Below are positions 18 through 19,880 of a stretch of 64,000 bases of DNA, in pieces. The position numbers and the translations under genes were made by a program. The stretch comes from Lepidodermella squamata (lineage: Eukaryota > Animalia > Gastrotricha): the NCBI GenBank assembly GCA_047495785.1, contig JBLDXI010000020.1, forward strand, positions 1 through 64,000, written 5' to 3'. The notes under the pieces are model-generated. The model ran no database searches, was not told the origin of the DNA, and saw only the letters and a list, made by a program, of their open reading frames with translations. Within the stretch, counting starts at the first letter, position 1, and each line of letters starts with the position of its first letter.

Positions 18-1594
18 TACTTGGACGCGGAACTGGCGAGGCTAAAAATGGCAGAACACAAGTCTTCTGTATTATTGCAAACGGCTGCCATGTCACTGTG
101 AAGTCCGCGCTGACACCAAGCCCTTCTTTGTCAGCGGCCCTGTAAGTCGTAGCCAGAGCGTCATCCAGCGCTGCCTTGACCGGAGGTGTCGCCGACTCGT
201 ATATCTCCTTGAGGCTCAGCCATTTCTCCGCTGCTCTGGCCAGGTTAACAGTTATCTTTAGCCTCAACTTCTCGCCCACCAGTTTCAGCGACAGGTCGAC
301 CGCCTCATTGGCCAGCGGTTCATAGTCTAATATGTCGTTGTCGCAAACGATCTTCGCGATGTCACGAACTGCCGGGTCAGACAGAGGAGATAGACTCAAA
401 ACTTTGGTCTTGTAACCGTCCATGTCCTTGAACACACGGAACGTTTGACGCCAAAAATCATTGAAAAGTTGCGTAGCGCGTTCAGTCGAGTCGCCGCCGG
501 TTCGGTTCGTCGGGTTGAAAGCCGATAGAAAAGCCGTGAAGCGATCGTTCGAACTCGAGGACCGCCCATCATCCGAGCGACGATCGCCGTTCTGACCATC
601 GAAACGCTTCCGATTGTACTTGCCGTTACCGTTGCCGAATCGATTGTTGTGGTTACCAGGCATCTAAGAAGATATTAAACAAATTCATTAGTGAGTTGAA
701 CTAACATCGCACGTACGGCACAAGCAAATTGTTAGGGTTAGTTTAGGGTTAAATACCAGACAGGAAGCCTAAGCAACCCCGGCAAAGAGGCTCTAATGCA
801 GTTCAACCCGAATGAATTTTTTTAAAAGTGAGCTTACCATGTTCGTTGTTTCTTCCGCGGGGATAACGGACGATAATACACAAAGATTTTAACAGAATCT
901 AAAATACAGAAACAATACAAATTGCTAGTTACAAGTTAAGGTTACCAGAACCTTAAATCATTTGTTTATAATAAATCGCCAATGTAGACACTAACCATAA
1001 GTGCCTAAGGGTGTGGCTCAAAAAGGATAGGGTGTGAACCTTAAGTGGTTAAGCCTATACAGGCTATTCCGTATTTAAATCTCTCAATGCTGAGATCGAG
1101 ACCGAATAGGATTTATGGTTCGTAACCATATCCAGTTATGTGGTTCAATCCGACCATAAGTATATGAACCTTAACTTAGGTCAAGCTTCAGTTCAGGGCT
1201 CTTGCTGAACCTTAAGTTATTTAGACTTAAGATACCTTAAGTCGACCCTAAGTTATTTAGGGTCAGGATACCTTAAGTCAACCTGAGCAGCCAAGGTGCC
1301 ACCACAGTTGCGGGAAGCGTGTTTCTAAATGCCACCCATTAGGGGGAAGCCAACCGATTATGCCACCCGTTGAAGGGAAGCCGCAAATGTGATGCCACCC
1401 GTTGAAGGGAAGCCGCAAATGTGATGCCACCCGTTGAAGGGAAGCCGAAAAGGTAACGCCACCCTTTTAAGGGAAGCCGACAACAAAACGCCACCCATTA
1501 GAGGGAAGCCAAGCCACCCGTGGAGGGAAGCACCCGATAATTAAGTTGAGGAGCGGTATTCAGTGAAATAACAGAATGTAATGCTAGATATAGT

Positions 1595-1663
1595 AAGCAA
1601 CGCCCATAGTGTCAGACCGGTTTCGCCTGTGGGCAGCAGGCTCATCAGTGACTCTAGTTGCTT
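1595..1663 (-). ncRNA. Mirror copy of HHR1
   Basis: Reverse complement of 6824-6892 in the left arm. Confidence 0.8.
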
Positions 1664-3685
1664 AAAACAAAATCCGCTCGAATGACGAAAATGTTCGAAA
1701 ATGAGGCTTTTTATACTGCGGTCCCTTCCGCCATTTTGAAAAAAATCGTGGCACGTGGGTTTTGGCGCGAAATTTTTTCTAGAAACTGATGTTATTTTCA
1801 TAACTCGGTGGTGGTGGTTAGTTTATTTCCAAGGGTTGACACGTTTTGGAATTTATTGGCCGCAGGTGATTTCAAGGTCGCTTAGCCGCAGGCGATAGAC
1901 TTAGAGTTAAGGTTTCTTACTTATGATTTCTTATGTTAGAAGTCGTTTGACCCTAAGTTCGGTATCCAGCAACATAGTCGATTTAAGGTTACTGTATATT
2001 ATTTAAGGTTCTGTTGAGTTTCGCTGCTCGTTTAAGTCCTCAAACCATATGTTAGATTTATGGTTAAGGTTACCCATTATCCTTCCTTTAATATAAGCCC
2101 ATCCCCATAAAGTGGACTTAAGGTTAGAGTCCCATAGTTAGAGCAAATGTGCATTTCCGCGTTAGGTTCTGTAGTAAAACCTTAAGTTTTTGACTTAGGG
2201 TTAAGGTTCGGGAATACCTTTGGACTTGTTGTGTTTCTGTTCTTTTTATGGTTTATGGTTAGAGTTAAGGTTCATGCCCCTGAAAAAGTCGTAAAATGCT
2301 CAACAACATGTTTTTTTATTTCAGAACACTCATCAGTTACACTCACATGACACAGACACAAATTGTCTCAAAAATCACGCTTCTTCATGATTTCGGCGCG
2401 AAGGCGAAGACGTTCTTCATCCAGCGCCTGAGCCTGGCCTAGCAGCTCTTTTCCGTGCTTCTTCAGGAAGTGGCCAAGTAAGCCGTCCGATCTGGTGCAA
2501 GTAAAGGCGCACGATCCAACTCGGCAGAAGATAATTGATTCTTTCTCGCCAGAGGCTGTAGGAGGTTGCTCAACACGCTCCCAGATGAGGTCGCCGTCGT
2601 AGTTGGCGCGGAGTTGATCCCAAGCGAGGCTTTCGGCTACCGCTCTAGCCGAGCCCCCAGCTAATCTTCGACTCGTAGTGGCGGGTCCTCGAGCAGGGGT
2701 GCTGCGGATAGTGACCGTGCTACTACTGCTCGATGACAATGAGCGTTCTGCGAAAAGGTAAAGTTAAGGTTACGGTATTCAATAAAGAGAGTTTCTTACC
2801 CTCTAACGACGGAAGTGGTCGTTTGCGATTCGCTCTGTTGACCGTAGGTGCGGAAGACGAAGCCATTGACCAGTTGAAGCGGGGTGCTGGTGACGAGGCT
2901 GCCGAGCTTGTAGCGCTGCTAAGTTCCAGTGGAGTCGAGGTTGCTCCTCCTCTCAGAGGCCGTCCGAACAAGTCGATATCCACGAAAAGTTCGCGATCGA
3001 GACGGACAACACACTCTCTGGTCGACAGTTTCGGATCTGGAGTCTCCAGGGTCGTATCTGGTTGCAGAGTTCTATCCAGGCGTGAGTGCGATTCGTCGGG
3101 TAGCTGATCGTCAGCCTCGACCTCGATCGCGTCTTCAGTAGTCGAAATCACTGGTGAGTCGGCGATTTCGATGACGCTATCATGGTCGCTTTCCGGTGCC
3201 GCGCTGCTGGTGACGACTACGGGTCCGTCGGTGCCCCGGGCCAGCTCTGGTTCCAAGTTGACTTGGGCACCATCGTCCTCAAGGAGGTCGAGGGCCTCCT
3301 GTAAAGTAGCCGAGTCTGCAGCAGAAAAGCTCCCAAGGCCACTAAAGGTTGACGCGCACACTTCGGGACCGTTGCTCGCCGATGGTTGTTCGAGCCTGCG
3401 ACCAATGGTAACGGGGGAGGGGCAGGGGGCTCTCCAAGCCGACTCAGGAGCCCAGCGGCCGGTGTCGTACGTGACGCCGAAGTTGAAGAATCTCCAACTC
3501 GGTGAAGTCGTGTCAGCTGGAAATGTTGTTATAGGGTTACGGATGCAAAGAAAGGATAAAAAAGGCAAGTAAATTTGCACCAACTGTTTTATTTCTCACA
3601 AATGTTAGTATCATGTTGGATCATCGTCAAATGTCATTGTTCAGGGCCATAGTTGCATTGAATGATGTCTTGTGTTGTTGTTTCT

Positions 3686-4196
3686 TTAGCTCTGACCTAG
3701 AAATTCAGATTTAGTGAAACGTTTACGATTATTTTTATTAAGACGAAGAGCCATTTTTCCTTTCCTTCGGATTAGGCTGTACGCGGGTTGAAGTGCTTTA
3801 GCATAGTGTAAAACGTGCATTGTCTCGTAATTTTTCTTTTTCTCCCGGTTGTTGTTGATAAAGGGCCACGTTTTTCCCTCCAATTTTGACAAGGTGCTTT
3901 TTGTAACTTTTGTGAGTAGTGTCCATGAGTACCCCCGTTTAACCAAGCTGTTGAAAAGGGAGAGCGTTGCATATGCCCAATCTGAGAAGGTTGAGGCAAT
4001 TCTGCTGAAGCGTAGAATTTGGGATTCAATGACACCACTGAAAATGTGTTCCGGATGTTCCGATCCGTAACTGAGCAAGGCGAGGTTATCAGTAGGTTTG
4101 AAGTAGACGCCCGTTTCTAGCCTACCCTGTTTTTTATAGATAATCATATCCAAGTATTGGCCACTAATCTGGGAAGAGGTCACTTCAAGTTTGATA
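3686..4196 (-). CDS. Mirror copy of the PLE RT C-terminus (lacks YLDD)
   Basis: Identical translation; lies in the left arm of the inverted repeat. Confidence 0.7.
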
Positions 4197-4802
4197 CTCG
4201 GTTGCCGTTACCTCGATGACCTCCTCACGATCTTTCTCAACAACCAAAGATCATCATCCTTTGAAGCGGATTACAAAAAACTGCACCCGAATATCAAACT
4301 TGAAGTGACCTCTTCCCAGATTAGTGGCCAATACTTGGATATGATTATCTATAAAAAACAGGGTAGGCTAGAAACGGGCGTCTACTTCAAACCTACTGAT
4401 AACCTCGCCTTGCTCAGTTACGGATCGGAACATCCGGAACACATTTTCAGTGGTGTCATTGAATCCCAAATTCTACGCTTCAGCAGAATTGCCTCAACCT
4501 TCTCAGATTGGGCATATGCAACGCTCTCCCTTTTCAACAGCTTGGTTAAACGGGGGTACTCATGGACACTACTCACAAAAGTTACAAAAAGCACCTTGTC
4601 AAAATTGGAGGGAAAAACGTGGCCCTTTATCAACAACAACCGGGAGAAAAAGAAAAATTACGAGACAATGCACGTTTTACACTATGCTAAAGCACTTCAA
4701 CCCGCGTACAGCCTAATCCGAAGGAAAGGAAAAATGGCTCTTCGTCTTAATAAAAATAATCGTAAACGTTTCACTAAATCTGAATTTCTAGGTCAGAGCT
4801 AA
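4191..4802 (+). CDS. Penelope-like reverse transcriptase, C-terminal part (5'-truncated), no GIY-YIG endonuclease
   Basis: RYLDD (motif C), QYLDMII (motif E), VYFKPTD and SYGSEHP..IFSGVIESQILRF thumb motifs typical of PLE RTs. The ORF stops after the thumb/linker. Confidence 0.88.
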   Translation: MILGCRYLDDLLTIFLNNQRSSSFEADYKKLHPNIKLEVTSSQISGQYLDMIIYKKQGRLETGVYFKPTDNLALLSYGSEHPEHIFSGVIESQILRFSRIASTFSDWAYATLSLFNSLVKRGYSWTLLTKVTKSTLSKLEGKTWPFINNNREKKKNYETMHVLHYAKALQPAYSLIRRKGKMALRLNKNNRKRFTKSEFLGQS

Positions 4803-4904
4803 AGAAACAACAACACAAGACATCATTCAATGCAACTATGGCCCTGAACAATGACATTTGACGATGATCCAACATGATACTAACATTTGTGAGAAATAAA
4901 ACAG

Positions 4905-6120
4905 TTGGTGCAAATTTACTTGCCTTTTTTATCCTTTCTTTGCATCCGTAACCCTATAACAACATTTCCAGCTGACACGACTTCACCGAGTTGGAGATTC
5001 TTCAACTTCGGCGTCACGTACGACACCGGCCGCTGGGCTCCTGAGTCGGCTTGGAGAGCCCCCTGCCCCTCCCCCGTTACCATTGGTCGCAGGCTCGAAC
5101 AACCATCGGCGAGCAACGGTCCCGAAGTGTGCGCGTCAACCTTTAGTGGCCTTGGGAGCTTTTCTGCTGCAGACTCGGCTACTTTACAGGAGGCCCTCGA
5201 CCTCCTTGAGGACGATGGTGCCCAAGTCAACTTGGAACCAGAGCTGGCCCGGGGCACCGACGGACCCGTAGTCGTCACCAGCAGCGCGGCACCGGAAAGC
5301 GACCATGATAGCGTCATCGAAATCGCCGACTCACCAGTGATTTCGGCTACTGAAGACGCGATCGAGGTCGAGGCTGACGATCAGCTACCCGACGAATCGC
5401 ACTCACGCCTGGATAGAACTCTGCAACCAGATACGACCCTGGAGACTCCAGATCCGAAACTGTCGACCAGAGAGTGTGTTGTCCGTCTCGATCGCGAACT
5501 TTTCGTGGATATCGACTTGTTCGGACGGCCTCTGAGAGGAGGAGCAACCTCGACTCCACTGGAACTTAGCAGCGCTACAAGCTCGGCAGCCTCGTCACCA
5601 GCACCCCGCTTCAACTGGTCAATGGCTTCGTCTTCCGCACCTACGGTCAACAGAGCGAATCGCAAACGACCACTTCCGTCGTTAGAGGGTAAGAAACTCT
5701 CTTTATTGAATACCGTAACCTTAACTTTACCTTTTCGCAGAACGCTCATTGTCATCGAGCAGTAGTAGCACGGTCACTATCCGCAGCACCCCTGCTCGAG
5801 GACCCGCCACTACGAGTCGAAGATTAGCTGGGGGCTCGGCTAGAGCGGTAGCCGAAAGCCTCGCTTGGGATCAACTCCGCGCCAACTACGACGGCGACCT
5901 CATCTGGGAGCGTGTTGAGCAACCTCCTACAGCCTCTGGCGAGAAAGAATCAATTATCTTCTGCCGAGTTGGATCGTGCGCCTTTACTTGCACCAGATCG
6001 GACGGCTTACTTGGCCACTTCCTGAAGAAGCACGGAAAAGAGCTGCTAGGCCAGGCTCAGGCGCTGGATGAAGAACGTCTTCGCCTTCGCGCCGAAATCA
6101 TGAAGAAGCGTGATTTTTGA
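4905..6120 (+). CDS. Accessory protein: acidic/Ser-rich region plus C-terminal C2H2-like zinc finger (spliced, intron 5689-5740)
   Basis: A phase-1 GTAAG...TTTTCGCAG intron joins ORFs 4905 and 5749 in frame; motif FCRVGSCAFTCTRSDGLLGHFLKKH. True start uncertain. Mirror copy at 2368-3583 (-). Confidence 0.6.
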
Positions 6121-6715
6121 GACAATTTGTGTCTGTGTCATGTGAGTGTAACTGATGAGTGTTCTGAAATAAAAAAACATGTTGTTGAGCATTTTACGAC
6201 TTTTTCAGGGGCATGAACCTTAACTCTAACCATAAACCATAAAAAGAACAGAAACACAACAAGTCCAAAGGTATTCCCGAACCTTAACCCTAAGTCAAAA
6301 ACTTAAGGTTTTACTACAGAACCTAACGCGGAAATGCACATTTGCTCTAACTATGGGACTCTAACCTTAAGTCCACTTTATGGGGATGGGCTTATATTAA
6401 AGGAAGGATAATGGGTAACCTTAACCATAAATCTAACATATGGTTTGAGGACTTAAACGAGCAGCGAAACTCAACAGAACCTTAAATAATATACAGTAAC
6501 CTTAAATCGACTATGTTGCTGGATACCGAACTTAGGGTCAAACGACTTCTAACATAAGAAATCATAAGTAAGAAACCTTAACTCTAAGTCTATCGCCTGC
6601 GGCTAAGCGACCTTGAAATCACCTGCGGCCAATAAATTCCAAAACGTGTCAACCCTTGGAAATAAACTAACCACCACCACCGAGTTATGAAAATAACATC
6701 AGTTTCTAGAAAAAA

Positions 6716-6807
6716 TTTCGCGCCAAAACCCACGTGCCACGATTTTTTTCAAATGGCGGAAGGGACCGCAGTATAAAAAGCCTCATTTTCGAACATTTTC
6801 GTCATTC
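6716..6807 (+). promoter_or_regulatory. Putative Pol II promoter: E2F site, E-box, TATA, Inr
   Basis: TTTCGCGCCAAA 6716-6727, CACGTG 6731-6736, TATAAAA 6772, TCATTC 6802. The E2F core and GTCATTCGAG recur in the paralogous region near 13559-13651. Confidence 0.5.
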
Positions 6808-6823
6808 GAGCGGATTTTGTTTT

Positions 6824-6892
6824 AAGCAACTAGAGTCACTGATGAGCCTGCTGCCCACAGGCGAAACCGGTCTGACACTATGGGCGTTGCTT
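6824..6892 (+). ncRNA. Type-I hammerhead ribozyme HHR1
   Basis: GUCA-CUGAUGA-GCCUG(CUGCCCA)CAGGC-GAAA-CCGG-UC-UGAC; distal stem AAGCAAC/GUUGCUU; predicted cleavage after C6872. Confidence 0.92.
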
Positions 6893-6955
6893 ACTATATC
6901 TAGCATTACATTCTGTTATTTCACTGAATACCGCTCCTCAACTTAATTATCGGGT

Positions 6956-7189
6956 GCTTCCCTCCACGGGTGGCTTGGCTTCCCTCTAATGGGTGGCGTT
7001 TTGTTGTCGGCTTCCCTTAAAAGGGTGGCGTTACCTTTTCGGCTTCCCTTCAACGGGTGGCATCACATTTGCGGCTTCCCTTCAACGGGTGGCATCACAT
7101 TTGCGGCTTCCCTTCAACGGGTGGCATAATCGGTTGGCTTCCCCCTAATGGGTGGCATTTAGAAACACGCTTCCCGCAACTGTGGTGGC
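6956..7189 (+). repeat. Array of 8 quasi-palindromic GCTTCCC-N5/6-GGGTGGC units with variable linkers
   Basis: Read directly; period about 31-32 nt; mirror at about 1299-1531. Confidence 0.9.
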
Positions 7190-7703
7190 ACCTTGGCTGC
7201 TCAGGTTGACTTAAGGTATCCTGACCCTAAATAACTTAGGGTCGACTTAAGGTATCTTAAGTCTAAATAACTTAAGGTTCAGCAAGAGCCCTGAACTGAA
7301 GCTTGACCTAAGTTAAGGTTCATATACTTATGGTCGGATTGAACCACATAACTGGATATGGTTACGAACCATAAATCCTATTCGGTCTCGATCTCAGCAT
7401 TGAGAGATTTAAATACGGAATAGCCTGTATAGGCTTAACCACTTAAGGTTCACACCCTATCCTTTTTGAGCCACACCCTTAGGCACTTATGGTTAGTGTC
7501 TACATTGGCGATTTATTATAAACAAATGATTTAAGGTTCTGGTAACCTTAACTTGTAACTAGCAATTTGTATTGTTTCTGTATTTTAGATTCTGTTAAAA
7601 TCTTTGTGTATTATCGTCCGTTATCCCCGCGGAAGAAACAACGAACATGGTAAGCTCACTTTTTAAAAAAATTCATTCGGGTTGAACTGCATTAGAGCCT
7701 CTT

Positions 7704-7757
7704 TGCCGGGGTTGCTTAGGCTTCCTGTCTGGTATTTAACCCTAAACTAACCCTAAC
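7704..7757 (+). other. Conserved 3'-terminal stem-loop (type A) plus short telomere-complementary seed
   Basis: TGCCGG-GGTTGCTTAGGCTTCC-TGT-CTGGTA followed by TAACCCTAAACTAACCCTAAC. Recurs at 12676-12728, 15889-15941 and, diverged, 17217-17292. Confidence 0.75.
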
Positions 7758-7824
7758 AATTTGCTTGTGCCGTACGTGCGATGTTAGTTCAACTCACTAA
7801 TGAATTTGTTTAATATCTTCTTAG

Positions 7825-8805
7825 ATGCCTGGTAACCACAACAATCGATTCGGCAACGGTAACGGCAAGTACAATCGGAAGCGTTTCGATGGTCAGAACG
7901 GCGATCGTCGCTCGGATGATGGGCGGTCCTCGAGTTCGAACGATCGCTTCACGGCTTTTCTATCGGCTTTCAACCCGACGAACCGAACCGGCGGCGACTC
8001 GACTGAACGCGCTACGCAACTTTTCAATGATTTTTGGCGTCAAACGTTCCGTGTGTTCAAGGACATGGACGGTTACAAGACCAAAGTTTTGAGTCTATCT
8101 CCTCTGTCTGACCCGGCAGTTCGTGACATCGCGAAGATCGTTTGCGACAACGACATATTAGACTATGAACCGCTGGCCAATGAGGCGGTCGACCTGTCGC
8201 TGAAACTGGTGGGCGAGAAGTTGAGGCTAAAGATAACTGTTAACCTGGCCAGAGCAGCGGAGAAATGGCTGAGCCTCAAGGAGATATACGAGTCGGCGAC
8301 ACCTCCGGTCAAGGCAGCGCTGGATGACGCTCTGGCTACGACTTACAGGGCCGCTGACAAAGAAGGGCTTGGTGTCAGCGCGGACTTCACAGTGACATGG
8401 CAGCCGTTTGCAATAATACAGAAGACTTGTGTTCTGCCATTTTTAGCCTCGCCAGTTCCGCGTCCAAGTACGGCTACGTCGACGCAGATGTTTTTGCGCT
8501 CGCCCACGACGTCATCACAAGTTGCGAAGGTCAAGACTGGCCGTTCCCACGCAATCGTGTCGACAACTTTCGCTACCAACAAGACTGGCGACCACCGGTC
8601 GAAACGAAGTTCGTTCGGCCACTACGGCCACTGTACGACATCGCACGCCGGCGACGCATTCGTCTCGTCACCCGACTCGGTCCAAGCGTTGTCAAGCAAC
8701 TCTGCCGAACGAAAGACTGCTAGCCGAACCAATCGACCAGTAGCCAGCGACGATGTCAAGAGTAGCAACAAAGCCACCGACCGTTTATTAATTATTCTTA
8801 ATTAA
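7825..8805 (+). CDS. Accessory ORF with N/R/G-rich N-terminus and helical core; probable upstream ATG micro-exon (7647-7649, intron 7650-7824)
   Basis: 326-aa ORF; ATG|GTAAG donor and TTCTTAG|ATG acceptor in phase 0. C-terminal frame is ambiguous (alternative ORF 8397-8723). Confidence 0.55.
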   Translation: MPGNHNNRFGNGNGKYNRKRFDGQNGDRRSDDGRSSSSNDRFTAFLSAFNPTNRTGGDSTERATQLFNDFWRQTFRVFKDMDGYKTKVLSLSPLSDPAVRDIAKIVCDNDILDYEPLANEAVDLSLKLVGEKLRLKITVNLARAAEKWLSLKEIYESATPPVKAALDDALATTYRAADKEGLGVSADFTVTWQPFAIIQKTCVLPFLASPVPRPSTATSTQMFLRSPTTSSQVAKVKTGRSHAIVSTTFATNKTGDHRSKRSSFGHYGHCTTSHAGDAFVSSPDSVQALSSNSAERKTASRTNRPVASDDVKSSNKATDRLLIILN

Positions 8806-9452
8806 TTCATTAGATTAATTACCACCATTACGCAGTATTATATGTTTCTCCACTAATGTTTTATAGCCTGTTCAACGCGGTATCGGCCAGTAACCCGCAG
8901 CGAGGTCTAATGTTCTGGACGTCAGCGAGTCATAGTCGCGCACGACCACGGCGGCCAAGCCATCCTGGTATCAACCAGTAACCCGCAGCGAGATCCAAAG
9001 TCGATAACGACCTTAGAATCGGCATATCCTGTTTTATGACTTTTATTGCTTTCAATACCTTGATGTCGCCGGCAATAACGCCTTGCGTCAGCTGTCAATC
9101 TTCTATTGGTCATCTTCATCATTGTAATTGTCGTCTCTCAACAGCACAGATGTCACGTTAGCTCGTCATCAAGGCCTCGCCAGCCTAGTAGCACACCTTG
9201 TTACCCATTTGGCTAGAATCACCGATTAACAAGTAGTGGCCACAACATCTGTGCGCTAATCCGATATAGTGCGCACACCTAGACGCACACCTGCCGTAGT
9301 TAACTTGAACTTAGTAACACGTGTGCGCGAAACAACACCTTGTAATCCTAATCCGCTGCGCCTAACATAGTCCGAGGCACACGCACCTGGTACGGTGTTA
9401 TCATAGCGCTGTCACAATAATGTCACTCGTTATAATTCTATCAGAAGTATGA

Positions 9453-9491
9453 TATTGGTACTGAAGAAATAGTGAAACCGGTCTACCAATA
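9453..9491 (+). ncRNA. Minimal type-I hammerhead ribozyme (helix II reduced to about 1 bp)
   Basis: UAUUGGUA-CUGAAGA-A(AUAG)U-GAAA-CCGG-UC-UACCAAUA; 8-bp stem I; palindromic ACCGGU stem III. Confidence 0.85.
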
Positions 9492-9500
9492 AATCTCGTT

Positions 9501-10583
9501 ATGTCTAACCGTAACCGTTTTGTTTCTAATAACAACGGGTTTACAGAAATTAACAACGACCGCCCGGGACGGGCCATCTTTGGCCGCTTCCGCTACGTCT
9601 ATTACAACTCGAGTCGTCACAATCCGCCCTATCAACAAGAACGGCGCGATCGTCATCAAAGCCGCTCGAAACAGACAGTCTCCGCAGCAGCGTCCAGTTC
9701 GAACACTCGATCTTACCGTTCGCACGAGGGTGCTACGCACGGCCGCTCCAGTCGCTCGCACGGGTCTGGTTCGAACGCTCAGTCAGACCGTCGGCACGCG
9801 GATGGTACGAAGCGACCGCAAGACTCAACGGACAACAGGCAGCTACCTTCTAAGGCAGCAGCAGAAGGGCAACGTCGAGCGAGGGAACATCGACAAGATC
9901 TCCTCGATCGCTTCCGCGAGAAACTCAACAATTTTATTCATCATTTCTTCATTTTAGCCAAGCTCGCCACAGCCAACTTCAGTGAAGACTACGCCAAACC
10001 TCAAAACGAGAGACCCACCACCGCTCACGAGAAGGCACTCCGGCCAGTGCTCGAGAAGTTTTTCCCGCGCGAGCATCGGTTCGAAGCTAGCACTCAGGGC
10101 ATCGTTGATTTGCTTTTTTACAATGTTGTTTCCGAGATACGTCATAAATCCATGACAGGACACGAGCAAGCTCTCGAAAGTGCGTTCACCGATGCACGCC
10201 AAGCAGCAAACTACTGCCATCCGTCGGACAGAGCGGCCCAAACGTCGCGGGTCTTCAACACTGTCGCGAGCAGCAACAGCGTGCTACGAGTCCTGCGCAA
10301 GTCGAGCAACATCTACTGGCCGGCGATCTACGAACAATTTCAATGCGCCTGCAACGAAATGAAACGCGCCATGCGCAGCCCTGACTTGCTCACCAACGTT
10401 ACGAAGGGCTGGCAGGCTTTTACTTATCACCTTGCGCAAAACAAAATACAGGCGGACCGCAGCTTACTAATTAACCCTAACCCTAACCCTAACCCTAACC
10501 CTAACCCTAACCCTAACCCTAACCCTAACCCTAACCCAACCCTAACCCTAACCCTAACCCTAACCCTAACCCTAATTTTCTGA
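9501..10583 (+). CDS. Accessory ORF (Arg/Ser/Gln-rich N-terminus, helical C-domain) reading into telomeric repeats
   Basis: 360-aa ORF, paralogous to ORF 11354 (MxxRNRxV...GxFRY; EKLxxFIxHF; GWQ...DRS). Ends in NPNPNP encoded by the telomere tract. Confidence 0.75.
   Translation: MSNRNRFVSNNNGFTEINNDRPGRAIFGRFRYVYYNSSRHNPPYQQERRDRHQSRSKQTVSAAASSSNTRSYRSHEGATHGRSSRSHGSGSNAQSDRRHADGTKRPQDSTDNRQLPSKAAAEGQRRAREHRQDLLDRFREKLNNFIHHFFILAKLATANFSEDYAKPQNERPTTAHEKALRPVLEKFFPREHRFEASTQGIVDLLFYNVVSEIRHKSMTGHEQALESAFTDARQAANYCHPSDRAAQTSRVFNTVASSNSVLRVLRKSSNIYWPAIYEQFQCACNEMKRAMRSPDLLTNVTKGWQAFTYHLAQNKIQADRSLLINPNPNPNPNPNPNPNPNPNPNPTLTLTLTLTLTLIF
10472..10575 (+). repeat. (TAACCC)n telomeric tract, about 17 units
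   Basis: Direct reading; one variant unit. Confidence 0.98.
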
Positions 10584-11078
10584 CACTGCGAAACATGTTC
10601 CTTATCACCAAAAAGAAATAAGAAAAAAGAAAAAATGATATTAATTTGTGTGCACCGACCGGGAGTCGATAGTGGATTTTCGTCATATTCAGGCTATAGA
10701 AAGCTCTAATCTTTGTAAAAAATAGCATGGCCTCCTAGGCTCATATCACAGGAAGTCCCGGAGGTGAAGATAATCACCCCGCTCCCTCCTGCCAAGCGTC
10801 AAGCCCTAAGGTCAAGTTGTTACGCTCAACCCGTCGGTTACCAAGACGGCTTATATTACGTCATGTCTATTGGTCTTATATATGTAAAATATCGCAAAGT
10901 TTATTATTTTCTTGCGCTCATCACGAATCTATTAATCTCTTGGTCTGACAAAAACTTTTGTTAAGCCGGTCAAGTCGCCGTCGAACAGCTGTAAAGGATT
11001 AAACTTTGTAACTATAGTTTGTGCTGTGCGACGCACAGCTGTTGTGCGCGCACCTAATTAACGCCGCGTTATAAGCGG

Positions 11079-11242
11079 CTTACTGCACAGGTGCTATCGC
11101 TACCGTTGTTAAGAAGTAGCGCCTAACTCGATCTTACTGCACAGGTGCGGTCGTTATCGCTGTTAAGATGCTGCGCCTAACTCGATCTTACTGCACAGGT
11201 GCCATCGTTATCGTTGTCAAGAAGTTGCGCCTAACTCGATCT
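11079..11242 (+). repeat. Three tandem 54-bp repeats, each containing CACAGGTG
   Basis: CTTACTGCACAGGTG...GCGCCTAACTCGAT x3, upstream of TATATA (11276) and the hammerhead at 11306. Confidence 0.85.
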
Positions 11243-11305
11243 CACCTGGGACCGGGCGGCGCAGCTTCCCTCATTTATATACGGTGAAAAAGTTGTTATT
11301 TTATC

Positions 11306-11341
11306 ATTGTCTCTGAAGAAACCTGAAACTAGTCAGACAAT
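11306..11341 (+). ncRNA. Minimal type-I hammerhead ribozyme
   Basis: AUUGUCU-CUGAAGA-A(ACC)U-GAAA-CUAG-UC-AGACAAU; palindromic ACUAGU stem III; ATG follows at 11354. Confidence 0.85.
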
Positions 11342-11353
11342 AAAACTTTTAAA

Positions 11354-12420
11354 ATGAATCACCGTAATCGTTATGTTACCGACAACTACGAAGGCTTTAC
11401 ATCGGCCAACTACGAACCAGCAAGGCGGTCTAACACAGGCCACTTTCGCTACAACTTCGTCAACTCGGCGGTAGCCGGTCGTTTAGCGCATCAGCGCCGA
11501 CCAGTTCAACGCCAGGAAGACAGTGTCAACTCGGCGGCAGCCGGTCGTTTAGCGCATCAGCGCCGACCAGTTCAACGCCAGGAAGACCGCGTCAACTCGG
11601 CGGAAGCCGGTCGTTTAGCGCATCAGCGCCGACCAGTTCAACGCCGGGAAGACCAAGTTCGCCATCGTCCCGAGCCCGAGCAACGCGCTCAAGCTCAACG
11701 CCACAACGGTCATGGCCGCCTTCGTCCCGAGCCAAGGCAGCGCTCTCCGCCTAGACAACAGTCGAGGCAAGCCCAGCCCGCTCAGACCAAGCCGGTCGAC
11801 CGTCAGCAACGCGACGCCAAGTATCGTCGGCTCATCCTCGAGCGATACTCAGAGAAGCTTGAATCCTTTATTAATCATTTTGTCATTCGAGCTCGTATTA
11901 GCACGGCCACCAACTGCGGTGGTCACACAGCACATGAAAATAATTTAGTTAAAAATATGTGCAAATTGTTTCCCTCAGATTCGCTCAACGCCGACGTCGT
12001 ACAAGTCCGGGACCAGTGGGTCAACAAGGCCATCAGCGAACTCCGTACTCGTTCGGGGTACGCTCGCTCCGTAGCCGCCCACGCCGTGTACGACGACGCG
12101 TCAGATGCGTTCAGGGGCTGTGCCAACCCCGCCGAAACAGCCGACTACGCCGCCCGCGCGTTCAACAAGGCGTGTCGTCAAGGCAGCACCGTGCAAGCAA
12201 TCCGTCAGATGCGCAATGTCAACTTGGGCGTGTCGAGGGAGAACTAGTCACCGCATGGAAAGCTGCGCTGTTCGCCATGAACGGCAAAAACCTGCGAGAC
12301 AACATTGTCTGCGGGTGGCAAGTTTTGCTTGAACAGCTAGCTCAATTTGATGAACCGAAGGACCGTAGTAACCCTACTAACCCTAACCCTAACCCTAACC
12401 CTAACCCTAACCCTAACCCT
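11354..12420 (+). CDS. Accessory ORF paralogous to ORF 9501, with three 22-aa repeats; frameshift/stop near 12245
   Basis: GAGAACTAGTC here vs GAGAACTTTGTC in the copy near 16711. The intact frame continues ...LRDNIVCGWQ...DRSNPTNPNP into telomeric repeats. Confidence 0.7.
12369..12420 (+). repeat. (TAACCC)n telomeric tract
   Basis: Direct reading. Confidence 0.97.
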
Positions 12421-12728
12421 TAGTTTTGGTTCAACTAAAGTGTGGTTCTACACTAATTGTTAACCTCAATCTTATGGTTCGGGTTCAATTAAGGCTTTTG
12501 TCTGGATGGAACTTTAAGTTATGGTTCCACGCACGACTTACGTTCAACCTTTATTTCAATTGATCATTGAAATCGGTTTAGCCCATCACCTTACTCTGCT
12601 GCTAATCCACAGATTAAAAAGTGGTTTACTCTCCTCTCACCGTTGCTAGAGTGAAATAGATCGCTAGAGCTTTTATGCCGGGGTTGCTTAGGCTTCCCGT
12701 CTGGTAATTAACCTAACCCAACCCTAAC
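12420..12728 (+). repeat. Direct repeat of 15633-15941 (pLTR-like 3' segment)
   Basis: Near-identical, offset 3213. Confidence 0.93.
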
Positions 12729-13666
12729 ACTGGCTCGTGTCGTGAGTACGGCGACCCCCTAACCCTTAGACGGCCTCTTAACATACACTTTGATGGAACT
12801 TTTCTCCATCAAAACTTATTCAGGCTCAACCTGCTAGGATGACATGGAGCCTTCTTCGGGCTATAATTACCCTGCTTTTATGCTGAGGGAAAAGGGCTAA
12901 GCAATATGACTAAACAAGCTACTGTGGGACAGTCATCAATTAACCGATTGACTCCACATTTGGATTAGTAGTGAGCTATGTCAGTACCGCATCTATGGTT
13001 TGTTGGTATCGTAATCCCGGGAACAACGATTAGTGCGGTCATTAGACTCACTACACTCATGAACGATCAATTGACTGTGCGTGCACAGGCAATGACGACC
13101 GATTGGAATCATTCTATGATCCACTAATGCTTAGACTTTCCCACAACAGACAGTAAAAAGTTGATATAAGTTTGTTGTAACTAGGGTAGAGATTATCAAA
13201 CTGTCATCTATGTTGTATGTAGAGAGTTCGAGGATGAAATATCTTATCCAGCGACAGGAGTAAGAAACCTCGATTCAAAGGAACACGATGGACAACAACA
13301 TATCGGATGTCTCGGACTACTAAACGAGATGATCTCAATAGAGACCAATAGACAATGACGCATGTTGTGTATTTAGAAACCATGGCCAGAGAACAGTGAA
13401 CTTTAACAGTTAACACTAAAGCTGCAAATACACTGAGTAGTGAACCTTAACTCTTAGCCTGTAGCCTGCGGCTAATTAATTTTAAAGCATGTCAACTCTT
13501 GGAAATAGGCCAAGTTCAAGCAAAATATTACGAAAATTATATCAAATCTTGAAAGAATTTTCGCGCCAGAACCCACATGGCACTAACATTTAAAGAACGT
13601 AAGAGAACGCGGTTTGTAAGGCCGTGCTTTGGAGAAATTCTGTCATTCGAGTGGATTTTGTTTTGA

Positions 13667-13732
13667 GCAACTAAAGTCACTGATGAGCCTGCTGCCCACA
13701 GGCGAAACCGGTCTGACTATTCTGGGCGTTGC
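13667..13732 (+). ncRNA. Type-I hammerhead ribozyme HHR3
   Basis: AGUCA-CUGAUGA-GCCUG(CUGCCCA)CAGGC-GAAA-CCGG-UC-UGACU; distal GCAAC/GUUGC. Confidence 0.92.
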
Positions 13733-13764
13733 GTATTTTCCATCGTCTACTTGTGATATCCTGG

Positions 13765-13980
13765 GCCATCCTTCCATGGGTGGTGCTTTTCCTTGTTGCT
13801 CCCCTCAATGGGTGGCTTGTACTCATTGTGCTCCCCTATACGGGTGGCATTTCATGTTTGCTCCCCTGCACGGGTGGCTTGAATCCATCGATGCTCCCCT
13901 TTATGGGTGGCCTGAATTTGAATCCATTGGTGCTCCCCTTTACGGGTGGCTTGAAACCTTTGGTGCCTTCCTTCGCGGGT
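13765..13980 (+). repeat. Array of about 7 GCTCCCC-N5-GGGTGGC units (paralog of 6956-7189)
   Basis: Direct reading; linkers differ from those of array 1. Confidence 0.88.
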
Positions 13981-14111
13981 GAATTGCCATCCCGCTATAC
14001 TCCTCGAGTAATGGAACTAGACGTGGTTCCTAGCATGCCTAAAACCTTAACTTTCATGTTTTGGTTCAAGTAAGGTTTCCTTCTCTAAGGAACCTTAGGT
14101 TATGGTTCTAC

Positions 14112-15290
14112 ATTTTATTTTATTTATTTATTTATTTTATACCGGCTTGCAATCAATCTCAAGGATTATTAGCAATCAAAGGCGCCTCACTGTAGATATC
14201 AAAAACTTCGTATTATCCAAGTTATCAACAAACAATTTAAAATTAGCTAAAGAGCCATTAACAATGTCTAAAGGCAGCTTGTTCCATAATATTACATACC
14301 TTCTAAGAAAAGAGAACTTAAAGCAGTCTCTGTGGCACATAGGCAATGAGAGCCTGTGCGTGTCAGCATATTTGTTGCTGGATTTGTTAAAAAATAAACC
14401 AAAATCAACATCAACAAAACCACGATATAATTTAAACATTAGTATCAAGTCACGTTGACAACGTCTATTTTCGAGAGTTTTCATGCTAAACATTTGGAGT
14501 AGGACTTTGTAGTCAGTCACCCTGTAACCTGTCATCCTTTTCAGGAAATTATGCAGAACTGATTCGAGCCGACTGATTACTGTTAGCAGATATGGAGAAT
14601 ACACAGTGGAAGCATAGTCGAGGTGTGGCATTACATAGACATTAAAAGCCTTAAGTCGTAGACTATTCGATTTGAAAGTTCGCAAAATGAATCCCGAAAT
14701 CCTGTTGCACTTGGCAATAATTTTAGAGCAGTGCGATTTAAAATTTAGATTCTCGTCTACCTCAATTCCGAGGTCTCGGATCGATTTAACAAACTCGATC
14801 TCGTGACCATTTATTGAGTACTTGAAATTAGCAACTTCAGCAGATTTCTTGCCGTTGAGGCGGAGAACAAAACATTTTTGGCTATTAATGTTAAGCCCAT
14901 TGTCGGCAAACCATTCGATGATATTGTTCAAATCAGCTTGAAGACTGTGACAATCTTCCACACAAGATATCTTATTATAGATCTTAGTGTCGTCGGCGAA
15001 GTACTTAGTTAAAGAAGTCCTTATACAGTCATCAGTGAATAGCAAGTACACAACGAACAGCAAGGGTCCAAGGACGGAGCCCTGTGGCACTCCAGATGGA
15101 ATATCAAATTTGCTAGATACCGAGTTGTTTATCAGAACTTTAAAACTCCTGCCGTATAGGTAACTTTTCAGCCAGTTAATGAGATTACCACACACATTAA
15201 TCTCTTCAAGCTTGCTAATTAATATATGAATAGGTACGGAGTCTACAAGCTTGCTAATTAATATATGAATAGGTACGGAGTCAAAAACTG
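14112..15290 (-). mobile_element. 5'-truncated non-LTR retrotransposon (CR1/L2/Jockey-type RT, ORF 14176-15195) inserted in the telomeric element
   Basis: SGVPQGSVLGPLLF, YFADDTKIY, DLGI motifs; (TAAA)n tail at 14112-14138; about 38-bp tandem duplication at the 5' junction (about 15208-15282). Confidence 0.88.
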
Positions 15291-15376
15291 GGATAAAAGG
15301 GATGAGTTACGTAGATCAGCTGCGGGAAGAGCCAACTCAGATCGACGAGGGCGGCATATACGATAAACATCAATAC

Positions 15377-15745
15377 ATACATTGTTGACCTCAACTTTAT
15401 AGTTGTGGTTCAATTAAGGTTGCCTTCTCTAAGGAACCTTAAGACATGGTTCTACTTACATTGCTGACCTCAACTTTATAGTTGTGGTTCAATTAAGGTC
15501 TCACTCTCTATGGAACCTTAAGTTGTGTTCTACACACTTTGTTAACCTTAACCTTATGGTTTTGGTTCAATTAAGGTCTCCGTCTGGATGGAACCTTAAG
15601 TTGTAGTTCTACACACATTGTTGACCTCAACTTTAGTTTTGGTTCAACTAAAGTGTGGTTCTACACTAATTGTTAACCTCAATCTTATGGTTCGGGTTCA
15701 ATTAAGGCTTTTGTCTGGATGGAACTTTAAGTTATGGTTCCACGC
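15377..15745 (+). repeat. Degenerate ~80-bp tandem repeats rich in AACCTTAA/TTAAGGTT
   Basis: Recurring GTTGACCTCAACTT...GGTTCAATTAAGGT...GGAACCTTAAG. The same array begins at about 14043, before the LINE insertion. Confidence 0.8.
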
Positions 15746-15921
15746 ACGACTTACGTTCAACCTTTATTTCAATTGATCATTGAAATCGGTTTAGCCCATC
15801 ACCTTACTCTGCTGCTAATCCACAGATTAAAAAGTGGTTTACTCTCCTCTCACCGTTGCTAGAGTGAAAGGGATCGCTAGAGCTTTTATGCCGGGGTTGC
15901 TTAGGCTTCCCGTCTGGTAAT

Positions 15922-16009
15922 TAACCTAACCCAACCCTAACCCTAACCCTAACCCTAACCCTAACCCTAACCCTAACCCTAACCCTAACCCTAACCCTAA
16001 CCCTAACCC
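15922..16009 (+). repeat. (TAACCC)n telomeric tract capping the next 5'-truncated unit
   Basis: Direct reading. Confidence 0.97.
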
Positions 16010-16896
16010 CAGCCGGTCGTTTAGCGCATCAGCGCCGACCAGTTCAACGCCAGGAAGACCGCGTCAACTCGGCGGAAGCCGGTCGTTTAGCGCATCAGCG
16101 CCGACCAGTTCAACGCCGGGAAGACCAAGTTCGCCATCGTCCCGAGCCCGAGCAACGCGCTCAAGCTCAACGCCACAACGGTCATGGCCGCCTTCGTCCC
16201 GAGCCAAGGCAGCGCTCTCCGCCTAGACAACAGTCGAGGCATGCCCAGCCCGCTCAGACCAAGCCGGTCGACCGTCAGCAACGCGACGCCAAGTATCGTC
16301 GGCTCATCCTCGAGCGATACTCAGAGAAGCTTGAATCCTTTATTAATCATTTTGTCATTCGAGCTCGTATTAGCACGGCCACCAACTGCGGTGGTCACAC
16401 AGCACATGAAAATAATTTAGTTAAAAATATGTGCAAATTGTTTCCCTCAGATTCGCTCAACGCCGACGTCGTACAAGTCCGGGACCAGTGGGTCAACAAG
16501 GCCATCAGCGAACTCCGTACTCGTTCGGGGTACGCTCGCTCCGTAGCCGCCCACGCCGTGTACGACGACGCGTCAGATGCGTTCAGGGGCTGTGCCAACC
16601 CCGCCGAAACAGCCGACTACGCCGCCCGCGCGTTCAACAAGGCGTGTCGTCAAGGCAGCACCGTGCAAGCAATCCGTCAGATGCGCAATGTCAACTTGGG
16701 CGTGTCGAGGGAGAACTTTGTCACCGCATGGAAAGCTGCGCTGTTCGCCATGAACGGCAAAAACCTGCGAGACAACATTGTCTGCGGGTGGCAAGTTTTG
16801 CTTGAACAGCTAGCTCAATTTGATGAACCGAAGGACCGTAGTAACCCTACTAACCCTAACCCTAACCCTAACCCTAACCCTAACCCTGAGGTTTGA
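16010..16896 (+). pseudogene. 5'-truncated, telomere-capped copy of ORF 11354 (intact 3' frame)
   Basis: Near-identical to 11538-12420 (offset 4472); begins abruptly after telomeric repeats and ends in tract 16842-16887. Confidence 0.88.
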
Positions 16897-16957
16897 AGTC
16901 ACTGATGAGCTACCTTAGCCAAGTAGCGAAACCGGTCTGACAAATTAGGCTAACCTC
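16888..16957 (+). ncRNA. Type-I hammerhead ribozyme HHR4
   Basis: GUCA-CUGAUGA-GCUAC(CUUAGCCAA)GUAGC-GAAA-CCGG-UC-UGAC; distal GAGGUU/AACCUC. Confidence 0.92.
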
Positions 16958-17261
16958 TTCATTTCTTGCTTCAAGTATCCATGTTGTATCATAATACTTT
17001 GCAGTCTTCCCATTGTCGTAATCTCTGCGGAGAGTTACGCTCAAAAACATTTCCTCTACGCAGCCTCTACGGAGTGTAGCGATCAGAACAGAGTATTTTA
17101 CGCAGCCTCTACGGAGTGTAGCGTATTTACGAATGGTCAGTATGCGTTAAACATACTAGTACCCATATAACCTTCAAGTTGTTCCCAAGTCGTTGGGTTA
17201 CAGGATTAGGACTCTTTGCCGGGGTTCTTTCATAAGAAACCTGTCTGGTATTCACATTGAT

Positions 17262-17292
17262 CTAACCCTAACCCTAACCCTAACCCCAACCC
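17262..17292 (+). repeat. (TAACCC)n telomeric tract
   Basis: Direct reading, preceded by a type-A stem-loop at 17217-17250. Confidence 0.93.
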
Positions 17293-17725
17293 ACACAAGG
17301 TAGAGACCCCGATCTCTAACCTCGACTCCTGAAGAGTAATGGTAGGGCCCGGCTTGTTTTCCTTCTGGAAAACCCCGGTTTGCAGCTTCGTCTGTAGTCA
17401 CACACCACTCAAAAAACCCTAACATATCTTGCCCGTTCGGTCCAATGGATCACCGTGAAATTTGGGAGTTGAGACAGAGATCTCGATATAAATAAGTGTC
17501 ATCCCATGGAAATGAAAACTCAATAATTCTTTGGATCTTCAGGCATTTCTCGATTAATCGCATGGAAATAGTGTTATCGAGTCCGCTTAACGCGAATATG
17601 TGTACGGCCAATGGCGAAGGCTCCAGATCGATCCAAAATGACCTAGTTCCAAGATGTGTCCCAAGATGACGCACTGAGAACAAAACACTGCTTTACAGGA
17701 ATTGAAATCTCGCTTGTTATGTTGC

Positions 17726-17955
17726 TGGGCTCTTTGATTTTTCGAATTGCCAAAATAGTGCTTAACAGGCTATTGATTTTTTGTGATACCGGTTCATGAT
17801 TTTTGAAAAACTTTCATGAGGGCTATGTTCTACACTAAGGTGTGGTGCCCGTAACAGATTGCAATCAATAATTGAAAATTATTGTGAATTTACCTGATTT
17901 TAAATAAAAAGGTATCGATCGAATGGCCAACGTGGTCTGAACCTCACAAAATAAT
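17726..17955 (+). repeat. ~230-bp direct repeat (second copy 18968-19197) flanking the zinc-finger gene
   Basis: Near-identical, offset 1242. Confidence 0.92.
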
Positions 17956-18045
17956 CTCGGACTGAAGTGACCTTGTCGGTTAATAACTCAATCATGCTGG
18001 ATAGGAAGTTGTCAATATTATTCATGGAATTCATGAATAATAATA

Positions 18046-18797
18046 ATGAGCCGCATAAATCTTTTCCAAGATTATCTAATTGACCGTATTTTTAATACAG
18101 ATCAACAAGATGAAAGTGCTAATTTGGCATCAGAGGATCTCTCTGATATCGAAATCGATGACAGAACTCACGAAGAATTCGTAAGAGATGAAATAGCACA
18201 ACACGAAAGCATGAATAGGTCAACAGACTCGTATAAAACCATATCGGGCCATCAATCAACGGATCTTGGTATTTCATCTGGTAACCCAGAAAGCCTTCAA
18301 TCGTCTGAACATAACGAAACATTGTCATGTACTAACGTGACTAACCCCCGTAAAAGGAATTTGGAATCAGAGGATAATAGCATCAACCCGAAGGTTGGTA
18401 AATTTGAGTTTCAAAACCTATAATACCGTTGACGAATTCTGACGAAAGAATCAAACTAACTTCAACACCTATTGCACCACAACTTTCAGAACAGCAACGT
18501 TGGAACATAGGAAAGAAGATTCGGCGTACGAGGAACGTGGAGGATTGGTGGAAGGCACAAATTAACGAAGTTTTCGGGAAGCCCAGCAAGCAAAATTTTG
18601 TTTGCTCTATCCAAGGCTGCAAATATAAATCGCCAAGATTGGATGGGATGCTAAAGCACTTCAAAGACAGGCATCATGAGAAACACAAAGATGCAGAGGC
18701 AGTGGCTGCCAAATTTTTCCGTTATTTCAAACTGAAAAAGTTCGGATTCATCAATGTGGAGGAAATATTGGCACGACACTCTGTTGTCGTAAAATAA
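18046..18797 (+). CDS. Second acidic plus C2H2 zinc-finger accessory gene (probable intron 18398-18489)
   Basis: FVCSIQGCKYKSPRLDGMLKHFKDRH aligns with the finger of the 4905-6120 gene. A phase-1 GTAAAT...TTTCAG intron joins the two ORFs in frame. Confidence 0.62.
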
Positions 18798-19454
18798 CAG
18801 CGACTTGGATTCTTCAAACCAAGTATGTACGAAAAGTACGAACAGTGTTATGAATGTATAAGGATTATGTAATTTGAACGAACATACTTAGGTTACGTCT
18901 TACCGATGCAAAAATACGTTCAAGGAACGATGTCAAGCTAAATATAAATGTGGTCATATCATTCAGTTGGGCTCTTTGATTTTTCGAATTGCCAAAATAG
19001 TGCTTAACAGGCTATTGATTTTTTGTGATACCGGTTCATGATTTTTGAAAAACTTTCATGAGGGCTATGTTCTACACTAAGGTGTGGTGCCCGTAACAGA
19101 TTGCAATCAATAATTGAAAATTATTGTGAATTTACCTGATTTTAAATAAGAAGGTATCGATCGAATGGCCAACGTGGTCTGATTTTCACAAAATAATATC
19201 ACACTCATTTGACCTTGACATTTATTATGCTCATCCGGACATCATTTAGGCCGTGTAATGTTTTCCTAATCCGTCTAATCCGTGGTCGGACACGTTCATA
19301 AAATGAGGGCGAGCAGCTGTTGCAAAAGAAGCTGCGCCTCGAATAACACTACGCTGCGCTACGAAATGCTCCATATGGCAGACACCACGCCGCCTTTGAC
19401 GCAATGCTTGGTATTTAAATGAATCGTTATTGAAAAACAAAGTCATTCTACTAA

Positions 19455-19519
19455 GAGGTTAAAGTTACTGATGAGCTACACTAGCCAAGTAGCGAAACCG
19501 GTCTGACGATGGCTACCTC
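19455..19519 (+). ncRNA. Type-I hammerhead ribozyme HHR5
   Basis: GUUA-CUGAUGA-GCUAC(ACUAGCCAA)GUAGC-GAAA-CCGG-UC-UGAC; distal GAGGU/ACCUC. Confidence 0.9.
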
Positions 19520-19831: not shown

Positions 19832-19880
19832 AACCCTAACCCTAACCCTAACCCTAACCCTAACCCTAACCCTAACCCTA
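19832..19880 (+). repeat. Innermost (TAACCC)n tract; boundary with single-copy DNA
   Basis: Direct reading. Confidence 0.97.

Follow-up and report, generated by a model that had tools for sequence, protein, structure and literature searches.

The window analysed here comprises the first 64 kb (64,000 nucleotides, nt) of one contig, JBLDXI010000020.1, in the 121-Mb assembly (151 contigs) of the gastrotrich Lepidodermella squamata. It holds five intact type I hammerhead ribozymes (HHR) of one kind, four on the forward and one on the reverse strand, lying among (CCCTAA)n telomere tracts and pieces of a reverse transcriptase (RT) gene. In each of them, part of loop II is complementary to a strand beside stem I, and it is this predicted pseudoknot that is analysed below. 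Positions of the hammerheads, their parts and the surrounding features are collected in Table 1. The reverse-strand copy was not counted as independent, because it lies inside a 99.86% inverted duplicate.

Table 1. Hammerheads and accompanying features. Positions refer to the window unless a contig is named; empty cells were left where no value is given.
Feature	Position	Strand	Remarks
HHR1, family A1	6826..6890	+	sequence, pattern match, parse, pseudoknot table
HHR1 distal stem	6826-6830/6886-6890	+	
HHR1 A-rich linker	6831-6834	+	
HHR1 stem I	6835-6838/6873-6876	+	
HHR1 core CUGAUGA	6839-6845	+	
HHR1 stem II	6846-6850/6858-6862	+	
HHR1 loop II	6851-6857	+	
HHR1 pseudoknot	6853-6857 with 6881-6885	+	GCCCA (loop II) with UGGGC
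HHR1 palindrome ACCGGU	6866-6871	+	predicted cleavage after C6872
HHR3, family A1	13667..13732	+	diverged copy of the HHR1 unit; 3' linker of 5 nt (4 nt in HHR1)
HHR3 pseudoknot	13694-13698 with 13723-13727	+	GCCCA with UGGGC
HHR3 palindrome	13707-13712	+	predicted cleavage after C13713
HHR4, family B1	16888..16957	+	begins immediately 3' of a (CCCTAA)n tract; next telomere tract 329 nt downstream
HHR4 pseudoknot	16915-16920 with 16948-16953	+	UUAGCC with GGCUAA
HHR4 palindrome	16931-16936	+	predicted cleavage after C16937
HHR5, family B3	19455..19519	+	stem I GUUA/UGAC, includes a U.G pair; telomere tract 331 nt downstream
HHR5 pseudoknot	19482-19487 with 19510-19515	+	UAGCCA with UGGCUA
HHR5 palindrome	19497-19502	+	predicted cleavage after C19503
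Fifth copy, identical to HHR1	1597..1661	-	within 18-4209, the inverted duplicate of 4279-8470
RT C-terminal third, family-A element carrying HHR1	4146..4793	+	tblastn, 66% identity to residues 626-843 of the 844-residue frame of contig C13
RT N-terminal piece	8140-8418		
Conserved 3'-terminal motif of family-A elements	7689..7763; also 12676-12751, 15889-15941	+	blastn
(CCCTAA)n tracts between stacked units	10472-10575, 12377-12420, 15925-16009, 16850-16887, 17262-17292, 19832-19880	+	Tandem Repeats Finder
Third-type hammerheads	C6:12423, C7:1345973, C15:1355288, C29:1944519, C54:596460		

Hammerheads were located with a core pattern consisting of CUGAUGA, 8-38 nt and GAAACCGGUC, which combines the hammerhead core with the ACCGGU stem III. 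The pattern matched the window five times (6839, 13680, 16902 and 19468 on the + strand; 1615-1648 on the - strand) against no match in 100 shuffles, and the genome 36 times against none for a reversed control. The exact core CUGANGA, the GAAA and the GUC site are present in all 5 window copies and in the 36 genome copies, with U, C or A at N7 among the variants. From 5' to 3', each copy consists of one strand of a distal stem (5 bp), a linker rich in A (mostly 3-5 nt, with a maximum of 13 nt in a single copy), one strand of a 4-bp stem I, CUGAUGA, a stem II of 5-6 bp closing a loop of 7-9 nt, GAAA, the palindrome ACCGGU (its last base being U16.1), C17 as the predicted cleavage site, the return strand of stem I, a linker of 1-9 nt and then 4-7 nt complementary to loop II. 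The return strand of the distal stem adjoins this pairing strand directly or after 1 nt, so that the pseudoknot helix would be able to stack on the distal stem.

An earlier sequence-only reading of this DNA had described four hammerheads with a covarying contact of loop II with stem I, and its pairings were found exactly in the sequence: GCCCA in loop II with UGGGC at 6881-6885 and 13723-13727, and UAGCC with GGCUA at 16948-16952 and 19511-19515. The alternative forms that it gave for stem II (GCCUG/CAGGC and GCUAC/GUAGC) and for the distal stem (GCAAC/GUUGC and GAGGU/ACCUC) each occur in one pair of copies, and all four copies contain ACCGGU. Two amendments were needed. The helix has the 5 bp described but is longer in some copies, reaching 6 bp in both HHR4 and HHR5. 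All four hammerheads fit at the positions given, but the window taken alone represents two independent lineages rather than four, because HHR1 and HHR3 belong to one family (their flanks are homologous, with 76% identity over ~270 bp) and HHR4 and HHR5 to another, in which the copies have the ribozyme in common and little else.

A covariance model, as the earlier reading had proposed, was built from 14 variants; it gave 46 matches in the genome, and the covariation reappears in this larger set. Intact copies lie nearly all within ~30 kb of contig ends (C9, C13, C14, C20, C32, C38, C41, C46, C54 and C57), and internal copies (C4, C7, C12, C48 and C32:4286932) are mostly damaged, the dead ones having lost the core. 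Four families were distinguished by stem II and distal stem, respectively: A (GCCUG/CAGGC; GCAAC/GUUGC), B (GCUAC/GUAGC, once GCUAU/AUAGC; GAGGU/ACCUC), C (GUCCCU/AGGGAC; AGGGU/ACCCU) and D (GUUCUG/CAGAAC; GAAAC/GUUUC). Across the 14 variants (alignment A1), 98.4% of the stem I and stem II cells were paired, compared with 21-40% in slid controls, and both sides had changed in 5 of 9 pairs.

For the pseudoknot, 19 distinct copies were compared. The mean length of the longest Watson-Crick match of loop II to the 16 nt that follow stem I was 5.2 nt, against 2.8 nt for the control with the 5' strand, and a helix of 4-7 bp between loop II and the sequence adjoining stem I was found in 18/19. Shuffling the 3' strand copy by copy gave P = 0.001-0.55 over all copies and 0.003-0.05 for those of the window. 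An all-family register was anchored on the invariant CC of the loop and GG of the 3' strand and scored with a purpose-written script. Next to the anchor, on the 5' side of the loop, the pair is C:G in A, G:C in B and A:U in C and D, with G.U in one C copy. At the following position, A1, C and D have G:C where A2, A3 and B have A:U, and the only mismatches are those of the two B4 copies, which have a shifted 5-bp register (GCCAA/UUGGC). The pair 3' of the anchor is mostly A:U and in A3 C:G, with mismatches in A2 and three B copies, and a fourth pair is U:A, C:G, U.G or U.U. Three columns thus carry compensatory changes, which also occur within family A, where G:C in A1 has become A:U in A2 and A3 and A:U has additionally become C:G in A3. 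When 3' strands were replaced by non-cognate ones, none of 133,496 derangements reached the observed score of 48.5 of 54 (mean 36.3, maximum 47.5). Because insertions and deletions beside the helix kept MAFFT from aligning all families in a common register for loop II and the 3' strand, the test with the counting tool was confined to families B, C and D: 85% of cells were paired, two pairs had changed on both sides, and the covariation score was 0.281 versus 0.161 +/- 0.031 in shuffles (0/500), a slid partner strand being 5-40% paired. Both the length (1-9 nt) and the sequence of the linker that precedes the pairing strand change freely, and the pairing strand itself is kept. On these comparisons the pseudoknot is very probably real in the evolutionary sense, and the earlier suggestion that a Watson-Crick contact is under selection is supported by the compensatory changes among the genome-wide copies.

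Between GAA and C17 there is only ACCGGU (or ACGCGU), which can form at most 1 bp within the molecule, with a four-base loop; a loop-closed stem III is thus lacking in this family. Two copies could form a 6-bp intermolecular ACCGGU helix of about -9.7 kcal/mol. The centre of stem III is CCGG in ~45 copies and CGCG in one (C32:4487041, ACGCGU), a double change that keeps the self-complementarity. In a second hammerhead family of the same genome, described below, the central dinucleotides are AU, GC and UA, all self-complementary; the two families jointly use all four self-complementary dinucleotides and no other among the copies examined. This pattern supports, without proving, the dimer model proposed for such ribozymes. 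The dimerisation-type stem III of the earlier reading is consistent with the palindrome and its self-complementary variant, and dimer use is an interpretation of them. In cofolded dimers, the distal stems exchange partners at equal energy. Rough energies for the four window copies were -9 to -11 kcal/mol for the hammerhead-competent nested fold versus -15 to -19 kcal/mol for competing nested folds; with the pseudoknot duplex (-8 to -9) included, the active fold reaches -17 to -20 kcal/mol, a sum that leaves out loop entropy. By this rough estimate, the active fold would need the pseudoknot to compete with misfolds. A hairpin between the 3' strand of stem II and the cleavage-site region appeared in the nested minimum-free-energy fold of the A copies and not in the B copies, and was rejected as a conserved feature.

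The carriers are probably endonuclease-free Penelope-like elements (PLEs) of the Athena type, together with non-coding passengers, on TTAGGG tracts. The same-strand (CCCTAA)n follows the cut site after 329-402 nt in family B and 632-861 nt in family A. In C13, two A3 copies flank an open reading frame (ORF) of 844 amino acids (aa) and one of 357 aa. The former has a YLDD motif and a weak RVT_1 match (23 bits against a Pfam cut-off of 29.6), and its comparison with Pfam gave no GIY-YIG match. Its atlas look-alikes are HTH_animal/DUF8422/RVT_1 clusters, commonest in Rotifera and some with GIY-YIG, which is a lead and not a test; a solved-structure search with the RT ORF returned group II intron and retron RTs at only E ~0.2. 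Between coding and non-coding units, similarity is confined to the ribozyme (52-75 nt, 86-96% identity) and a motif of 75-105 nt by the telomere junction, and the non-coding 1605-bp unit of C32 likewise has just the hammerhead and the 3'-terminal motif in common with family-A elements. The ribozyme is therefore a conserved island in otherwise unalignable units, which supports selection. At C32:4488724-4499992 (loci L020-L027), eight exact tandem 1605-bp non-coding units each carry an A2-type hammerhead, and the innermost has a (CCCTAA)n tract 632 nt past its cut site; the arrangement resembles more-than-unit-length copying of a passenger RNA. Tandem copies in C57 are spaced 1793 bp apart, and carriers in C9 are gene-less units filled with a 178-bp satellite.

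Several further observations concern these arrays. The inverted duplication of 18-4209 and 4279-8470 lies at the outermost contig end with its pivot inside the RT ORF; it matches the habit of PLEs of leaving inverted 5'-truncated copies, and a fold-back assembly artefact could also explain it. C32 likewise has an inverted outermost copy, 4502285(+), against a (-) array. In the B-family copies at 16888 of the window, at ~768 of L031 (C41) and at ~1534 of L034 (C54), 5' truncation has placed the junction with telomere repeats 12-32 nt upstream of CUGAUGA. Since this holds for all three, the template that is copied may preferentially end at the ribozyme's 5' edge. An ORF at 14176-15195 (-), between HHR3 and the next telomere tract, has a clear RVT_1 match (E = 2.5e-12) and is probably a different retroelement caught in the array. 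A hammerhead-like motif at 9457-9487 (+), with stem I GGUA/UACC, core CUGAAGA and GAAACCGGUC, has core and ACCGGU but no stem II, and was excluded from the family for this reason; a RAGATH-1-hammerhead-like Rfam match of 24 bits at 9434-9488 is the same motif. It sits 14 nt upstream of the ATG of an ORF at 9501-10583 that runs into the telomere tract 10472-10575. Apart from the arrays, a potassium channel RNA editing signal of Rfam at 32262-32368 (-), with 51.4 against a gathering score of 51 bits, implies that the host is an animal and has a channel gene of the Shaker type.

Two other kinds of hammerhead were found in the same genome. With a relaxed pattern, a second and larger family was recovered, dispersed inside chromosomes and often in close inverted pairs (for example C2:2036556-2036642 and C4:1386516-1387283). 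Its layout is CUGAAGA-U-GGC...AAUAAA...GCC-GAAAC-AU/GC/UA-GUC, with an extra U before a stem II of 3-5 bp, an A-rich loop II, a stem I of 2-4 bp and the palindromes ACAUGU, ACGCGU or ACUAGU. Among 15 copies, loop II was complementary to either flank over just 1-3 nt, and no pseudoknot was found. It is like the pseudoknotted family in its type I topology and palindromic stem III, and it fits the published minimal PLE consensus, including the extra U, which the pseudoknotted family does not. The third type (n = 5) consists of canonical type I hammerheads whose stem III is stable and palindromic (ACGUAUACGU). Its loop II, UUGGCC, has an unvarying complement of 4-5 nt directly after stem I, at the same topological place as the pseudoknot strand, which is suggestive of a similar contact.

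Taken together, the data make it likely that the covarying pseudoknot serves self-cleavage in a dimeric type I hammerhead of telomere-stacked, endonuclease-free PLEs and their passengers. The units are stacked head-to-tail on TTAGGG telomere tracts. In each ribozyme, 4-7 nt of loop II would pair with the 3' strand of the internal loop in the extended stem I, and the resulting helix, abutting the distal stem, would keep stem I alongside stem II. Tertiary contacts play such a stem-aligning role in fast natural hammerheads. With nothing but the palindrome ACCGGU as stem III, the ribozyme would most likely be active as a double hammerhead joined by the 6-bp intermolecular helix III, in which the partner copies lie at a distance of 1.6-6 kb on a single transcript, either read-through or multimeric. 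The predicted cut after GUC, which is 330-860 nt upstream of the 3' end complementary to the telomere, would reduce multimeric transcripts to unit length. Catalysis, dimer use, a rate-enhancing role of the pseudoknot and a role in the life cycle are all inferred, whereas the sequences themselves show the architecture, the covariation in stems I and II as well as in the pseudoknot, the link to telomere tracts and to an RT without an endonuclease domain, and the lack of the contact in the dispersed family.

Against this interpretation stand a number of points. All sequences come from a single genome; a metagenome scan with the core pattern gave four chance matches, all without stem I, and thus no relatives outside it, and a search of sequencing runs found no RNA run containing the stretch, its sole match not being recorded as RNA and probably representing the source DNA. 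The Rfam scan of the window, at gathering and E-value thresholds, placed no hammerhead family above its cut-off (best HH9, 18.4 against 52 bits), which is expected because the models require stem III. The helix is also uneven: in family A2 it is down to 4 bp with an A.C mismatch, in the B4 copies it contains an internal mismatch and its register is shifted, the internal copy C32:4286932 has lost half of it, and in B1 copies the last 1-2 pseudoknot nt compete with the distal stem. The shuffles ignore relatedness and related copies inflate the statistics, leaving about five independent compensatory events, a modest but consistent number. These last points would favour an unconstrained complementarity that a few related repeat families owe to descent or chance, as would the collapse of the four window copies to two lineages and the weakness of single-copy shuffle tests in some families (P = 0.2-0.4 for A2). 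We nevertheless regard that explanation as highly improbable: three columns show pairing-restoring changes on both sides, within family A as well as between families, the neighbouring linker is free in length and sequence, slid registers lose the pairing, and the identical search on the dispersed hammerhead family returned nothing.

More weight has to be given to two readings in which the pairing is constrained for another purpose. The fold might be kept as a recognition or positioning module for the RT of the element, the pseudoknot stabilising a compact structure of the 3' region and cleavage being irrelevant. Coding and non-coding units have nothing in common beyond the hammerhead and a short 3' motif, which is what cis-acting recognition modules would show, and a review of rotifer Terminons describes the hammerhead as a 3'-terminal fold presenting telomere-complementary repeats (PMC6431247). 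The hammerhead of the Poseidon PLE, moreover, was cleaved only with the protein of the element, and its insertion in vitro was unaffected by catalytic mutants (PMC11167929), so that catalysis may matter little. A purely structural role predicts otherwise, however, than what is found here, where all catalytic core nucleotides and GUC are kept across families in which every helix has changed and where internal dead copies lose the core; the motif also lies 330-860 nt from the 3' end rather than adjoining the telomere repeats. We consider this reading unlikely. Somewhat less likely still is a contact in trans, in which loop II forms a kissing contact with another copy's 3' internal-loop strand and aids the dimer without locking the fold in cis. 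The palindromic stem III makes a dimer expected, and covariation is blind to cis versus trans between identical neighbours, such as the tandem copies at 1605 bp (C32) and 1793 bp (C57). In the hammerhead structure, though, helices II and III are coaxially stacked and each stem I is next to the stem II of the same ribozyme, from which the stem I of the partner should be distant in a double hammerhead (an expectation from that structure and not a computed one). The known hammerhead pseudoknots act in cis (PMC3088659), and because the arrays of the window and of C13 mix A and B copies, whose pseudoknot strands differ and whose stem III is the same, a trans contact could not join A/B neighbours, unlike stem III.

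If the pseudoknot does serve self-cleavage, a broader proposal can be made, tentative and on balance doubtful, that a guild of telomere-extending retroelements has the pseudoknotted hammerhead as its cis-acting processing module, one that folds by itself and cleaves as a dimer without protein, unlike the protein-dependent minimal PLE ribozymes. It would then cut multimeric transcripts of RT elements and gene-less passengers alike into unit-length, possibly circular, templates, and copying of these onto the G-overhang would run past a single unit. Such a module would explain why otherwise unrelated units share only the ribozyme and a short 3' motif, and also the eight exact 1605-bp tandem passenger units that end in a telomere tract. 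The question matters because PLE hammerheads are numerous yet poor cleavers in vitro without an established role, one of them requiring the element's own protein, as noted for Poseidon. The genome offers a natural contrast between the pseudoknotted telomeric family and the contact-free dispersed family, and a compact construct of 65-70 nt suits questions of protein-free speed, dimer need and the role of cleavage in telomere-primed reverse transcription. Current hammerhead descriptors and Rfam models miss the pseudoknotted, stem III-less architecture.

Compared with known systems, what appears to be new, on the present sequences, is a pseudoknot-type tertiary contact in a PLE-type hammerhead without stem III, such contacts being already known in other hammerheads; there is a minor but appreciable chance, to be set against this claim, that Lunse et al. 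2017 or Arkhipova et al. 2017 already describe it. Two reviews, in agreement with the sequence-only reading, describe the PLE/Terminon hammerheads as minimal and without helix III or tertiary contacts (PMC6155905, PMC7761336). These are likewise type I with a palindromic helix III hinting at dimers; they sit in the repeated ends of PLE units and are tied to telomere-attached endonuclease-free PLEs, as is probably the case for the telomeric family too. In the PLE consensus of Cervera and De la Pena 2014, stem II is preceded by an unpaired nucleotide, helix II has 6-8 bp, helix I is short and loop 1 is ill-defined, whereas the telomeric family has no extra nucleotide, a 5-6-bp stem II, a two-part extended stem I and the covarying pseudoknot; as for the consensus helix III, absent or palindromic at 15.2-16.2, CCGG or CGCG was found in all copies. 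In rotifer Terminons, telomere-complementary repeats are reported to stand immediately downstream of the hammerhead (PMC6431247), unlike the 330-860 nt that separate them in the telomeric family.

Outside the PLEs, pseudoknots between stems I and II occur in ~40% of hammerheads, and mutation and rescue showed them to be needed for fast cleavage at low Mg2+ (PMC3088659). The pseudoknot hammerheads of Perreault et al. 2011, including human C10orf118 (HH10), likewise have a Watson-Crick helix of at least 4 bp from loop II to the sequence adjoining stem I, and share with the present family that this helix replaces the non-canonical loop-loop contact. They differ in having a stable stem III and acting as monomers, where the telomeric family has a bare palindrome, and in a pairing strand that is a free tail and not, as in the telomeric family, a strand of an internal loop closed by the distal stem. 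Amphibian hammerheads combine a one-pair helix III, with a palindromic tetraloop, and canonical tertiary contacts, and dimers are required (PMC7229834). These type I ribozymes of satellites and retrozymes (newt; axolotl HHR_Amex1) thus likewise have a weak palindromic helix III and a contact linking stem I to stem II, but the contact is the canonical non-Watson-Crick one between loops 1 and 2 where the telomeric family has a Watson-Crick pseudoknot, and they lie in tandem repeats of 330-350 bp where the telomeric family is found in telomere-attached PLE units.

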